Assembly: GCF_016432865.1 (NCBI RefSeq)
Contig: NC_067403.1
Coordinates: 262,632,001-262,696,000 of the forward strand
From: Antechinus flavipes
Lineage: Eukaryota
Reading direction: 5' to 3'
Length of the DNA stretch: 64,000 bases
Shown one piece after another: positions 3,601 to 22,386 of this stretch; the first letter of the stretch is position 1, and each line of letters begins with the position of its first letter. The notes under the pieces are model-generated. The model was not told the origin of the DNA, did no database searches, and saw only the letters and a program-made list of their open reading frames with translations. Position numbers and translations under genes: made by a program.

Positions 3601-5641
3601 GTGGGAGGAGGTCCGGGGGGCAGGGCCCTGGGGGGCAGCCCTGGGGGGAGGGCTCTGGGGGGCGGCCCTGGGGGCAGGGCTGTGGGGGGATCCGGGGGGC
3701 AGGGCTGTGGGGGGAGATCCGGGGGGCAGGGCTGTGGGGGGCAGGGCTGTGGGGGGAGGTCCGGGGGGGAGGGCTGTGGGGGGAGATCCGGGGGGAGGGC
3801 TGTGGGGGGGTCCGGGGGGGAGGGCTGTGGGGGGAGATCCGGGGGGCAGGGCTGTGGGGGGAGATCCAGGGGGGCAGCCCTCCGAGCCTGCAGCCACTTG
3901 TTCCCTCGCCCACAGCTCGGCTCCCTGGAGGAGGCCGCGCACCTCAAGGTGGAGAAGCAGACCTTCGGGGAGGCCATCAAGCAGCCCGGGGTCACCTTCA
4001 TCGCCGCCAAGTTCGACGGCATCCTGGGCATGGCCTACCCCCGCATCTCGGTGGACAACGTCATGCCCGTCTTCGACAACCTCATGGATCAGAAGCTGGT
4101 GGACAAGCAAGTCTTCTCCTTCTACCTGAACAGGTGGGGGTGGGGCAGGGGCGGGGGGACCGGTGGTCCAGGCCAGGGCTCCTTGGACCTTCCCCACACA
4201 ACACAAGCTTTCCCAAGTTTTGCTTCTCAGAAGGGGGGCGTTGAACCCCGGGGCGCGGCGTCCCCCCAGAGTCTGTGGGAGTGGGATCTTCCAGCTACTC
4301 GGGGCGGGGTCGGTCTGGAACCGTCTGGGCCGGCCCCGTCGTGGTGGAGACCCGAGCGTCCTTCCCCTCCCCTCCCCCAAGGTGGGGCCCCGTGGGCTGG
4401 CGGGGGGCGGGCCTGACGGACGTCCGCCCCTTCCTCCTCGTGCAGGGACCCCAACGCCCAGCCCGGCGGGGAGCTGACGTTCGGGGGCACGGACAGCAAG
4501 TACTATAAGGGGGACTTCACCTACCTCAACGTCACGCGCAAGGCGTACTGGCAGATCCATATGGACATGTGAGTGCTGGGCCAGGGGGGCAAGTGGGAGC
4601 CCCCGGCACCCAGACTGCCGTGGTGGGAGGGAGAGCCCCTTGGGGAGACTCCTTGGCCCCGTGTGTATTGATTGTGCTCCCCTTGGAGCCATCCTGGGAG
4701 GGTCCCTCCTCCCCCCCGCCAGACAAGGCCCAAGCCGGGCGGTGACCCCGGGGCAGGGGTCCGGGAGCCCAAAGAGCCGGTCTTGCTTCCTGGTCAGGGT
4801 GAAGGTGGAGAACGGGCTGACCCTGTGCAAGGACGGCTGCGAGGCGATCGTGGACACGGGCACCTCCCTGATCACGGGCCCCGTGCAGGAGATCAAGGCG
4901 CTGAACAAGGCCGTGGGCGCCGTCCCCCTGGTGGGAGGGGAGGTGAGAGGGGAGCCGGCTCGGGGTGGGGCTTGGGGGGCAGCCCGGGAGGCTCCCTGAC
5001 CCCCTCCTCTGTCCCCCGCTCTCCACAGTACATGATCTCCTGTGACAAGGTGACCAGCCTCCCGCCCATCTCCTTTGTGCTGGGCGGCAAGAACTTTAAA
5101 CTCACGGGCGAACAGTATGTCCTCAAGGTCAGTGAACCCCCTTGTCTCGTTCTGGCGGGAGCGGCGCATAATAGGTGCTTTATGGAAGCCTGGGGGGGGG
5201 GGCCCGGCCTCCAGGATGGGTGGGGAGCACGAGAGGGGCCCTCGACCTCCTGCCAGAGAGGGGGATGGTCCCCCCGGGCTGGAAGGGCGAGGGGCCCCGG
5301 GGTGGCTGGGGTCTCCGGGCCGGGGTCTGGGGCTCCAGCCAAGCCTCAAGGGGCACAGATCCACGGGCCCGGCCTCGGGTAGCTTCTGGTTTAATGTGCC
5401 GGCCAGAGGCGGGCACTGGGCAGAGGGAGGAAGGGCGGGCCGGGCACCCTTGCCCACGGGCCTGCGGCGTTCTCCCCAGGTGAGCCAGGGTGGGCAGACC
5501 GTCTGCCTGAGCGGCTTCATGGGCATGGACATCCCTCCCCCGGGGGGGCCCCTCTGGATCCTGGGCGACGTCTTCATCGGCCGCTACTACACCACCTTCG
5601 ACCGGGACAACAATCGCGTGGGCTTCGCCACGGCCTGCTGA
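534..5641 (+). CDS. CTSD: Cathepsin D (lysosomal aspartyl protease), 9 coding exons, 1230 nt, 409 aa
   Basis: Exons 534-619, 2077-2230, 2989-3112, 3303-3421, 3916-4133, 4446-4568, 4798-4942, 5029-5127, 5480-5641. All introns are GT-AG with consistent phases. Signal peptide [26 protein letters not shown], propeptide [13 protein letters not shown], two catalytic DTG motifs (3049-3057, 4853-4861), and C-terminal [25 protein letters not shown]. Confidence 0.98.
1525..1735 (+). repeat. G-rich minisatellite in CTSD intron 1 (~6 copies, ~35 bp)
   Basis: Recurrent core GGGAGGCTGCTCTG(T/C)CCCT followed by variable poly-G. Confidence 0.85.
2077..2230 (+). CDS. CTSD: CTSD exon 2 (propeptide)
   Basis: Acceptor ctctcccag|A; encodes [13 protein letters not shown]...PEMLKNYLD; donor GTGAGT. 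Confidence 0.97.
2989..3112 (+). CDS. CTSD: CTSD exon 3 (first catalytic DTG)
   Basis: [41 protein letters not shown]; AG/GT boundaries. Confidence 0.98.
3303..3421 (+). CDS. CTSD: CTSD exon 4 (flap region)
   Basis: (W)[39 protein letters not shown]; AG/GT boundaries. Confidence 0.98.
3428..3876 (+). repeat. G-rich minisatellite filling CTSD intron 4 (~18 copies, ~24-25 bp)
   Basis: Unit approx. GGGGCAGGGCTGTGGGGG(G)AG(G/A)TCCG. Confidence 0.92.
3916..4133 (+). CDS. CTSD: CTSD exon 5 (processing loop)
   Basis: [42 protein letters not shown]...FSFYLNR; AG/GT boundaries. Confidence 0.97.
4446..4568 (+). CDS. CTSD: CTSD exon 6
   Basis: [40 protein letters not shown]; AG/GT boundaries. Confidence 0.98.
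4798..4942 (+). CDS. CTSD: CTSD exon 7 (second catalytic DTG)
   Basis: [28 protein letters not shown]...GAVPLVGGE; AG/GT boundaries. Confidence 0.98.
5029..5127 (+). CDS. CTSD: CTSD exon 8
   Basis: [33 protein letters not shown]; donor AAG|GTCAGT; phase 0. Confidence 0.98.
5480..5641 (+). CDS. CTSD: CTSD exon 9 (last coding exon)
   Basis: [53 protein letters not shown] (TGA at 5639-5641). Confidence 0.98.
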
Positions 5642-6072
5642 GCGCCCCCTCGTTGCCCGCCAGGACGGGGGGCTTCTGGCGGAGGAATGGAGAGAGAACG
5701 TGGTCCGGAGAAGCCCCTTGCCGCCCCCCAGCCCCCACGACGCCCCCACTGATGCCCCCGCCCCCATACTCCGTGTATTCCCCTCCCCCCCCCGCCCCCA
5801 GGCACAAAAGGGCCACGGCTGCTGCTGAGCTTTGGCTGCGCCTTTGGACACAGAGGGAGCTGGGGGCTTGGCTCAGCCCCTCAGCCTCTCCTTAACCCCG
5901 AAACTTGGGGCTTCGCCCCCCACTCCCCCTTGCTCAAGGCTGAGCCGAGCTGAGGGTGTCGGCCGGGGCCCCGCAGGCCTGGGGGGGCCCGGGGCAGGCC
6001 GCGTCCTGCCTGAGCCCCTGGAGCCCCGCCCTGGGCCCCTCTCACTCCCTGATTGCCGACAGGCAGAGTGAA

Positions 6073-6078
6073 AATACA
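6073..6078 (+). terminator. Candidate non-canonical CTSD poly(A) signal AATACA
   Basis: Best PAS-like hexamer in the ~450 nt after the stop, followed by U/GU-rich sequence (TTTT...GTGTCAGTGTGTTTGTG). No AATAAA or ATTAAA seen before the L1 at 7.6 kb. Confidence 0.45.
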
Positions 6079-6799
6079 GGTTTTGGGGGGACCTTTTCCT
6101 GTGTCAGTGTGTTTGTGGGGGGCGGGAGGGAGGGCAGTGCGGATTGGTAGAAATGACCCGCCGGGAGCCACGGGTCGGATGTGCCGGTTGTTGGGCTCCC
6201 TCATCTCCCCGGGCCCCTGGGGGTGAGAGGCTGGTGGGCAAATCCTGCCTCCGGAGCCACCCAGAGCCCTGAGCCCCTCGAGCCCGGCCCAGCCGGGGTG
6301 TTCAGTCTCGGGCTTGTTCTAGTAGCTTCTCCCAGGGAGCTCAGGCCGGGGAGCTCGCTTAGGTGGGGGCGGGGAGCTGGGCCCTGAGGCCTCGGTGAGC
6401 GATGGGGTGGGTTCTGGATTCGAGTCTCATGGCCAGAAGGGGACAGCCGGGGCTGGCTTCTAGGCCTTTCAGGGCAAGACCCCAGCTGATCTGCTTGGGG
6501 ATGGGGGCCCAGAGGAAGTGAGTGAAGTACAGGGAGGGAGCACAGGGTTGGGAGGGGCAGTTCTTATAGAATCCAGTGGTGAGAGGGACCCTGGCAGGGC
6601 CCCCTGCCCAACAACTGGTCCTGGGTCTCAGTTCAGAGACCTCCAGGGAGCAGCTCCTCCCAGCTCTGGAGCTGCTGGGACGGTGCTGGAATGCCAGATG
6701 TGGATCCTGGCAAATTCTGCCCGTCGGGCCTCGTTCTGTCCCCTTGACCCTCCGAGTTCTGATCCAGCATTTTCTAACTTGGCGATTCTGGACAGTCCC

Positions 6800-6920
6800 T
6801 TCCACTTAGGTCTGTCTCAGTTTCCCCAGCTGTAAAATAGGCATTATGATAGCACCTCCTTTCCAAGGTGGTTGTGAGGGTCAAGGAGAGACTTAAAATG
6901 TCTGGGACATGATAAATGCT
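6800..6920 (+). mobile_element. MIR/CORE-SINE fragment
   Basis: CTCAGTTTCCCCAGCTGTAAAATAGG core followed by ...GTTGTGAGGGTCAA...ATAAATGCT. Confidence 0.7.
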
Positions 6921-21250: not shown

Positions 21251-21468
21251 TGAGGGATTGCGCCTGTCAGGGCCTGGGGACCGAGGGTGTCTGGGAGGAC
21301 ATGGCCTGGGTTTGAAGATGTCATTGTGAGGGATGAGAGGGGAGGGGAAGAGTGTGCGTGTGTGTGTCTAGGGATGTCATCAGTGGGTCTGAGTGGGGCT
21401 TTGTGTCCCAGATATGGAGACTATTGTGTCATCGTGGGCTTGGGGGTGTCCGTGTGTATCTGATGATG

Positions 21469-21503
21469 TTTGTGTGTGTGTGTGTGTGTGTGTGTGTGTG
21501 TGT
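21469..21503. repeat. (TG)n microsatellite
   Basis: About 17 TG units. Confidence 0.9.
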
Positions 21504-21933
21504 GAGTCTGAGTGTGTGGAGAGAGGGAGGGAGGGGGAATAACAGACTCCAGAATAGCGACAAGCCCCCCCACTGCCGGGAAGGCACAGGACTGCAAAGT
21601 CCTCTGGCAGCCGAGCTTGGAGGGGGGAGGTGGGAGCAAGAGGGAAGTGGGAGGGATGGCAGTGGCCATGCTGCAGGCCCGGGGTGGCCAGGCAGGGCTG
21701 GCTCATCCCTGGACAGGAGAACTGTAGCAATGATCTCAGTGAGCACTGAGGAGGCCAGGAGGGGCCACAGGCCGGCCGAGGCTCCGAAGGGAGGGCAAGA
21801 TTGCAGGGAAGAAGGGGAGAAGCCCAGAAGCCGGGGGCCCCCTTGGGGCCAGGGCCCCGCCCCGGTCCCCAGTGTGAATTCTGATTTGTGTTCCCTTTCC
21901 TTCTCCCCTCTGCTCCCCCTCCCGCTCTTACAG

Positions 21934-22386
21934 GGCTGCCCCGGCCAGTCCTCGGCTCCACGTCTGACCCCAGCCGGCACCACGGAGGGCCCTCAGGAAG
22001 CCCGGGTGACCCCGTCCTGCCCCCTGGACGGGGCCTTCTGGATCCCCCGGCCTCCCGGCGCCCCCCCCAAGGGCTGCTTTGCCTGCGTGTCCAAGCCCCC
22101 GGCCCTGCAGCCCTCGGCGGCCGGCTCGGCCGCCGCGCAGGGCCCGGCCCCCAGCCTGTGTCCCATGGAGGCCAAGAGTTGCAAGGCCGACAGCGTCCGG
22201 ACCGGCACGGGCTCGGGGCCCGGCAAGCACTCGGCTGAGAAAAAGACCATGACCAACCCCACCACGGTCATCGAGATCTACCCTGACACCACCGAGGTCA
22301 ACGACTATTATCTCTGGTCCATCTTCAACTTCGTCTACCTCAACTTCTGCTGCTTGGGCTTCATCGCTCTGGCCTACTCCCTGAAG
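21934..22386 (+). CDS. IFITM10: IFITM10 exon 2 (453 nt, phase 0-0, fully open)
   Basis: Polypyrimidine tract and acceptor cttacag|GGC; donor AAG|GTGGGT at 22387. Confidence 0.95.

Follow-up and report, generated by a model that had tools for sequence, protein, structure and literature searches.

The donor-like start of the last CTSD exon in a dasyurid CTSD-IFITM10 gene pair: probably two ordinary codons

In the 64,000-nucleotide stretch of Antechinus flavipes DNA analysed here (NC_067403.1, positions 262,632,001 to 262,696,000; hereafter the window), the cathepsin D gene CTSD is followed on the same strand by IFITM10, and exon 9, the last of CTSD, opens with the donor-like hexamer GTGAGC. A first-pass annotation had proposed that this hexamer, once joined to exon 8, gives this lineage a two-step splicing route to a CTSD-IFITM10 read-through product. 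The sequence observation is accurate, and overall the evidence speaks only weakly for the interpretation placed on it. We favour, with a probability of roughly 0.7, the reading that this is an ordinary orthologous CTSD-IFITM10 pair of a dasyurid-like marsupial, in which GTGAGC is a plain Val-Ser and any fusion is made by the usual conjoined-gene splice. According to this explanation, GTGAGC would have arisen in the dasyurid lineage through a serine codon change, and CTSD transcripts would end mostly at a conserved, intrinsically weak AAUACA signal near 6.1 kb. Upon read-through, splicing would run, as is usual for conjoined genes, from the upstream gene's last donor to the downstream gene's first acceptor. 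Re-splicing from the rebuilt donor would be chemically possible and would lead to the same mRNA, and nothing requires it.

The elements that form the predicted join are the following (positions in the window):

5029-5127, plus strand: CTSD exon 8, 33 codons, ending in phase 0; Pfam Asp profile positions 235-267 of 315
5128-5479, plus strand: CTSD intron 8, 352 nucleotides (nt), with a modest tract of 13/20 pyrimidines before exon 9
5480-5638, plus strand: coding part of CTSD exon 9, starting GTGAGC (Val-Ser) and followed by the stop codon TGA at 5639-5641
21934-22386, plus strand: IFITM10 exon 2, 151 codons (453 nt), phase 0 at both ends; CD225; donor AAG/GTGGGT
27225-27374, plus strand: IFITM10 exon 3, 49 codons (27225-27371) and TGA; CD225 profile positions 31-67

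By direct reading, with a slash marking the splice junction, exon 8 and its intron meet as CTCAAG/GTCAGT at 5127 and exon 9 begins as ccccag/GTGAGC at 5480, so that the spliced exons read AAG/GTGAGC, just as the first-pass annotation had described. It had also held the rebuilt donor to be at least as strong as the native one. We took as a proxy of donor strength the predicted duplex energy with the 5' end of U1, in place of MaxEntScan, and by this proxy the claim stands: the rebuilt donor reaches -9.6 kcal/mol and the native exon 8 donor -7.3, compared with -5.2 for the rebuilt placental site and -13.7 for the consensus. GTGAGC is also the actual donor of CTSD intron 1 (CAG/GTGAGC, 619/620), and among the eight exon junctions of CTSD a donor is rebuilt only between exons 8 and 9. 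As for how such a motif may come about, GTG makes up 57% of the Val codons and AGC 40% of the Ser codons of CTSD in the window, and from this usage a Val-Ser pair is expected to be written GTGAGC with a frequency of about 0.23. In human, a donor above the 90% threshold is rebuilt by 3.6% of exons, in 21.7% of genes (Blazquez et al., 2018; PMC6224609). Taken together, these two figures indicate that the motif is not beyond chance, and exon 9 probably opens with two ordinary codons, GTG and AGC, in the GC-rich usage that this gene prefers.

Intron 8 itself is 352-403 nt long in dasyurids versus 87-100 nt in placentals. It also opens with a sequence that would read Val-Ser (GTC AGT), and a gain of the intron by tandem duplication was considered and rejected, since its position is common to all mammals read and placentals do not have such similarity.

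Comparison among mammals agrees with an origin of the motif by codon change. The Tasmanian devil has, at the DNA level, both AAG/GTCAGT and ccccag/GTGAGC as in the window, and its exon 9 protein is identical. For two other marsupials, exon 9 was read at the protein level only, the junction being Lys/Val-Thr in tammar and Lys/Met-Ser in wombat; a Met first codon implies that no GT is rebuilt in wombat, and a Thr second codon implies a C at +5 in tammar. The Val-Ser pair is consequently not fixed in marsupials, since it occurs in the window and the devil and is replaced by Val-Thr in tammar and by Met-Ser in wombat, a variability that the first-pass annotation itself had named as speaking against its proposal. 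In all four placental loci read (Scotinomys, Tupaia, Ovis and Myotis), exon 9 starts with GTGTCG or GTGTCA, a poor donor, and the native exon 8 donors of these loci are good (GTGAGT, GTAAAT, GTGAGC and GTGGGC). Judged from these sequences, the donor-like motif is specific to one lineage, the dasyurids, and the start codons of exon 9 seem to have drifted at a position that tolerates change. Read against the placental loci L002-L005 and the proteins P0137 and P0155, the second codon (5483-5485 in the window) is a TCR serine in placentals, threonine in tammar and an AGC serine in dasyurids. A switch of serine codon family from TCR to AGC with threonine (ACN, as in tammar) as the intermediate is a plausible path.

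The frame of the predicted fusion was confirmed from exon lengths and by exon-by-exon translation. CTSD exons 1-8 add up to 1068 nt, that is 356 codons, which places the end of exon 8 in phase 0. IFITM10 exon 2 likewise begins in phase 0, so that the fusion is in frame, as it is in placentals, and its 356, 151 and 49 residues would give the 556 amino acids announced by the first-pass annotation. The open frame of IFITM10 exon 2 follows from its being coding in the long isoform of IFITM10 itself. Both catalytic DTG motifs, situated upstream of exon 9 in exons 3 and 7, would be kept, also as proposed. With exon 8 the Asp profile is covered as far as position 267 of 315, so that the fusion would miss about 48 positions and presumably, judging from the pepsin fold, one partner of a conserved disulfide as well.

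A read-through of this gene pair in human, which the first-pass annotation had mentioned, is indeed published: Varley et al. (2014) described an in-frame fusion in which CTSD's last donor is spliced to IFITM10's first acceptor and CTSD exon 9 is skipped, the two genes being 2.2 kb apart (PMC4085473). We searched for fusion proteins with the window exons as protein queries, scoring the exon part alone, and models uniting Asp and CD225 were listed for about a dozen placentals. The junction ...LK/AQGP, from exon 8 to IFITM10 exon 2, was confirmed in the models of Kogia, Phyllostomus, dog and Scotinomys; those of Ovis, Tupaia, Mirounga and Puma join CTSD and IFITM10 at other points, and those of primates gave no match to the searched junction motif. 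One further cluster, P0253, carries the name Homininae and may contain human; it was left out of the comparison. Scotinomys, Tupaia and Ovis have a poor rebuilt site (U1 duplex -5.2) and yet have fusion models, in Scotinomys with exactly the junction of the window. A fusion modelled where the rebuilt site is weak indicates that the motif is not needed for it. Regarding marsupials, the search, sized for proteins of 222-705 amino acids, returned placental fusion proteins only and none from a marsupial, which is weak evidence given the thin marsupial annotation.

Some of the models with other joins have features of their own. That of sheep (P0282, Ovis ammon) uses a donor inside exon 9 (...DQNR/AQGP) and keeps nearly the whole protease, and the elephant seal "cathepsin D isoform X2" (P0269, Mirounga) runs from CTSD exon 2 straight to IFITM10 exon 2. 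The Tupaia assembly has two copies of the exon 9 start flanking a run of N (L003 11612-11713 and 12543-12686), a duplication that probably accounts for its 684-amino-acid fusion model with two Asp segments.

The fusion could be thought of as a selected functional isoform across therian mammals, with the phase match and the dasyurid motif maintained for its sake. The window and the placentals examined all have an in-frame junction, and in human breast cancer cells the fusion was accompanied by a protein band and a modest effect on proliferation, although it was undetected in normal tissues (PMC4085473). Nevertheless, the phase match follows from two old and independent gene structures, CTSD intron 8 being in phase 0 in all species read, and IFITM10 exon 2 has its own coding role in the long isoform. 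The loss of the last approximately 48 positions of the protease fold and the lack of a marsupial fusion protein in the database search also argue against selection, which we consider very improbable.

The 3' end of CTSD bears on how often read-through can occur. The elements beyond the CTSD stop are the following:

6073-6078, plus strand: AATACA, probably the poly(A) hexamer of CTSD, 432 nt past the stop, in a GAAAATA[C/A]AG context common to other mammals
6094-6120, plus strand: downstream element rich in U and GU, with a G-rich run after it at 6121-6140; element shared with rodent and tree shrew
20250-21250, no strand assigned: CpG-island-like block, with GC 0.73-0.78 and CpG observed/expected 0.65-0.72

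The first-pass annotation had stated that neither AATAAA nor ATTAAA occurs for about 2 kb after the CTSD stop. This is right, the stretch free of both being 2.08 kb (ATTAAA first occurs at 7724, AATAAA at 7859); to read it as the lack of a poly(A) signal would be too strong, as the signal is present in the form of the AATACA at 6073. After the CTSD stop of devil, Scotinomys (+618) and Tupaia (+772) we found GAAAATACAG, then TTTTGGG and then a T-rich run ending in CTGTGT, and in Ovis and Myotis the same place and GAAAATA-AG context hold AATAAA. The shared context and position identify AATACA at 6073 as the orthologous CTSD poly(A) signal, from marsupial to placentals. Identity between the window and the devil is about 95% up to the downstream element and drops beyond it. 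[quoted passage not shown] A leaky 3' end formation of CTSD is a reasonable expectation, the signal being weak but present.

Among the species read, both dasyurids, the rodent and the tree shrew have the hexamer AATACA, and sheep and bat have AATAAA; its orthologous positions in the placental loci are approximately 12575 (L002), 13472 (L003), 9762 (L004) and 12734 (L005). CTSD, a housekeeping gene of high expression, has retained a weak variant of the hexamer.

Both genes are on the plus strand, and the acceptor of IFITM10 exon 2 lies 16,292 nt past the CTSD stop, a gap of 16.3 kb where the four placental loci have about 5 kb. The CpG-island-like block upstream of IFITM10 exon 2 is probably the promoter of IFITM10, for which we propose it as a candidate. 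It may be that no meaningful fusion is made in this species, AAUACA termination, the 16-kb G-rich gap and a CpG-island promoter of IFITM10 keeping the two genes apart. The conserved poly(A) signal with its GU-rich and G-rich downstream elements, the long gap, the G-rich minisatellite at 14964-15355 and the CpG island at 20250-21250 would all fit such a separation, whereas 16 kb is still within the 30-kb range of read-through (PMC4450057). A complete separation seems to us highly unlikely, and it is compatible with the favoured explanation, from which it differs in degree only.

Several points weigh against the ordinary reading. The rebuilt AAG/GTGAGC outpairs the native exon 8 donor with U1 (-9.6 versus -7.3), and the native donor GTCAGT has a C at +3 in both dasyurids (5128-5133 in the window and 13809-13814 in L001). 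A C at +3 is rare in splice donors, and the four placentals have G or A at this position. Since intron 8 is short (352 nt), its removal should usually be complete long before transcription arrives at the acceptor, 16.8 kb further on. Exons 8 and 9 would then often be joined already in a read-through transcript, leaving re-splicing as the only route to the fusion. Moreover, AAUACA binds the specificity factor poorly, so that read-through may not be rare, and the placental fusion proteins are mostly gene models and not experiments.

A rival explanation is that dasyurids do use AAG/GTGAGC in read-through RNA, exon 9 being spliced in and then out together with the 16-kb stretch, with more of the 556-amino-acid fusion as the result. 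The better pairing of the rebuilt donor, the C at +3 next to a short intron 8, the weak poly(A) hexamer and the use of the same hexamer as the donor of intron 1 would favour it, as would the modest acceptor tract of exon 9 (13/20) compared with the approximately 40-nt pyrimidine tract that precedes the IFITM10 exon 2 acceptor. Against it, terminal-exon definition is usually coupled to the use of the poly(A) site, and between the conserved poly(A) signal and the only acceptor, 15.9 kb further on, there are G-rich minisatellites. Tammar and wombat lack the motif, and for species whose rebuilt site is poor the same fusion has been modelled or proven. Reconstituted donors are normally repressed by the exon junction complex, in line with the first-pass annotation, and 93.8% of the human exons that rebuild a donor are constitutive; even with the exon junction complex, however, a strengthened reconstituted donor can force skipping of the exon (PMC6224609). 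We therefore regard the use of the rebuilt donor in dasyurids as unlikely. A stronger version, in which the dasyurid combination of a donor with C at +3, a strong rebuilt donor and AAUACA would make terminal-exon re-splicing the main route to the fusion mRNA, appears on the sequences at hand more doubtful still.

The identity of both genes, which the first-pass annotation had given correctly, rests on Pfam matches to Asp and CD225 and on the identities with orthologues. CTSD exons were mapped by translating open stretches and reading each boundary in the DNA. The remaining exons are the following:

534-619, plus strand: CTSD exon 1, coding part with signal peptide; donor CAG/GTGAGC; orthologous to devil CTSD (P0122)
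2077-2230, plus strand: CTSD exon 2, from open-stretch translation and boundary reading
2989-3112, plus strand: CTSD exon 3; contains the first catalytic DTG; matches Pfam Asp at profile positions 1-39 (E 2.7e-16)
3303-3421, plus strand: CTSD exon 4
3916-4133, plus strand: CTSD exon 5; Pfam Asp match
4446-4568, plus strand: CTSD exon 6
4798-4942, plus strand: CTSD exon 7; contains the second catalytic DTG; matches Pfam Asp at profile positions 187-226

The nine exons of CTSD contain 1227 coding nt, or 409 codons, and the devil model also has 409 amino acids and is the top match over exon 5 (92% identity). Exons 3, 5, 7 and 8 match PF00026 (Pfam Asp) separately, and the Asp domain, the two DTG motifs and the orthology with CTSD identify the gene as cathepsin D. 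Inside CTSD there are also two G-rich minisatellites, one with about 16 copies of a 27-nt unit in intron 4 (3435-3877) and one with a 34-35-nt unit in intron 1 (1529-1736).

IFITM10 is recognized by a CD225 domain divided between exon 2 (profile positions 3-30) and exon 3 (31-67) and by its long N-terminal extension. Exon 2 shares 98% of its residues with tammar IFITM10 and 62-74% with IFITM10 of placentals, birds and reptiles, and the N-terminal part of the long isoform is kept as far as birds and reptiles. Upstream of the acceptor, the frame of exon 2 stays open for 199 further codons (21337-21933), with in-frame ATGs at 21463, 21466 and 21730, and the tammar and opossum IFITM10 models begin within the equivalent of this stretch. 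Exon 3 of IFITM10 begins with GTTCGA and its junction reads AAG/GTTCGA, a weak rebuilt site (U1 duplex -4.2), which indicates that exons starting with GT are common.

The interval between the two genes gave no sign of a hidden gene or RNA, as we found no Rfam matches in it and no Pfam matches in its eight longest open reading frames. The intergenic minisatellite at 14964-15355 consists of 19 copies of a 20-nt unit (GC skew +0.47), and another G-rich one, with units of 36-47 nt, lies at 20241-20455, just 5' of the CpG-rich block. Amid GC-rich DNA there is an AT-rich block at 7500-9500 (GC 0.32-0.44), dense in AATAAA and ATTAAA and probably an inserted repeat; its open reading frame of 225 amino acids (8406-9083) has no Pfam match. 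The odd C-terminal tail of protein P0002 was pursued as well and dropped, since it matched only a repeat-like stretch of the minus strand near 10.7 kb.

The CTSD locus shows that codon choice commonly gives rise, as a by-product, to exon starts that resemble a donor. It also shows that the in-frame CTSD-IFITM10 design is old and common to therian mammals, and this design is already known from placentals without the motif. The alternation of AATAAA and AATACA in mammalian CTSD may bear on the repeated read-through of this gene pair. If the rebuilt donor were used, a finished terminal exon could be removed again, repression by the exon junction complex would be tied to fusion transcripts, and marsupials versus placentals would offer a natural contrast for testing re-splicing. 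Were terminal-exon re-splicing in fact the main route, it would constitute the first recursive splicing at a last exon that feeds a two-gene fusion.

Three known systems can be compared with this gene pair. Like the putative recursive-splicing exons (RS-exons) of Blazquez et al. (2018; PMC6224609), CTSD exon 9 begins with GT and a donor-like tail and rebuilds a donor after ...AAG. RS-exons are defined by a rebuilt 5' splice site with a MaxEntScan score of at least 5.52 (PMC6224609), a threshold that exon 9 probably reaches, considering the U1 proxy and the use of the hexamer in intron 1. However, the class is defined on internal exons with a downstream acceptor, and CTSD exon 9 is terminal: there is no acceptor before the poly(A) signal at 6073, and the only known one, at 21934, belongs to the next gene and needs read-through. 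The second system is that of read-through chimeras (cis-SAGe), which occur over a range of up to 30 kb and join one gene's penultimate exon to the next gene's second exon, the "2-2" rule (Qin et al., 2015; PMC4450057). The window pair agrees with it in being same-strand neighbours less than 30 kb apart (16,292 nt, with no Pfam-bearing open reading frame between) and, by arithmetic, in a second-to-last-to-second-exon join that keeps the frame. The closest system is the human CTSD-IFITM10 fusion, with the same orthologues in the same order and strand and the same predicted join, which also skips IFITM10 exon 1; the join in the window is a prediction from sequence only. With respect to placentals, the window has a longer stop-to-acceptor gap (16.3 kb versus about 5 kb in the four loci), GTGAGC and not GTGTCR at the start of exon 9, and an IFITM10 acceptor 6 nt downstream of the placental junction. 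The fusion model of Kogia has 556 amino acids, a size equal to that of the product predicted here.

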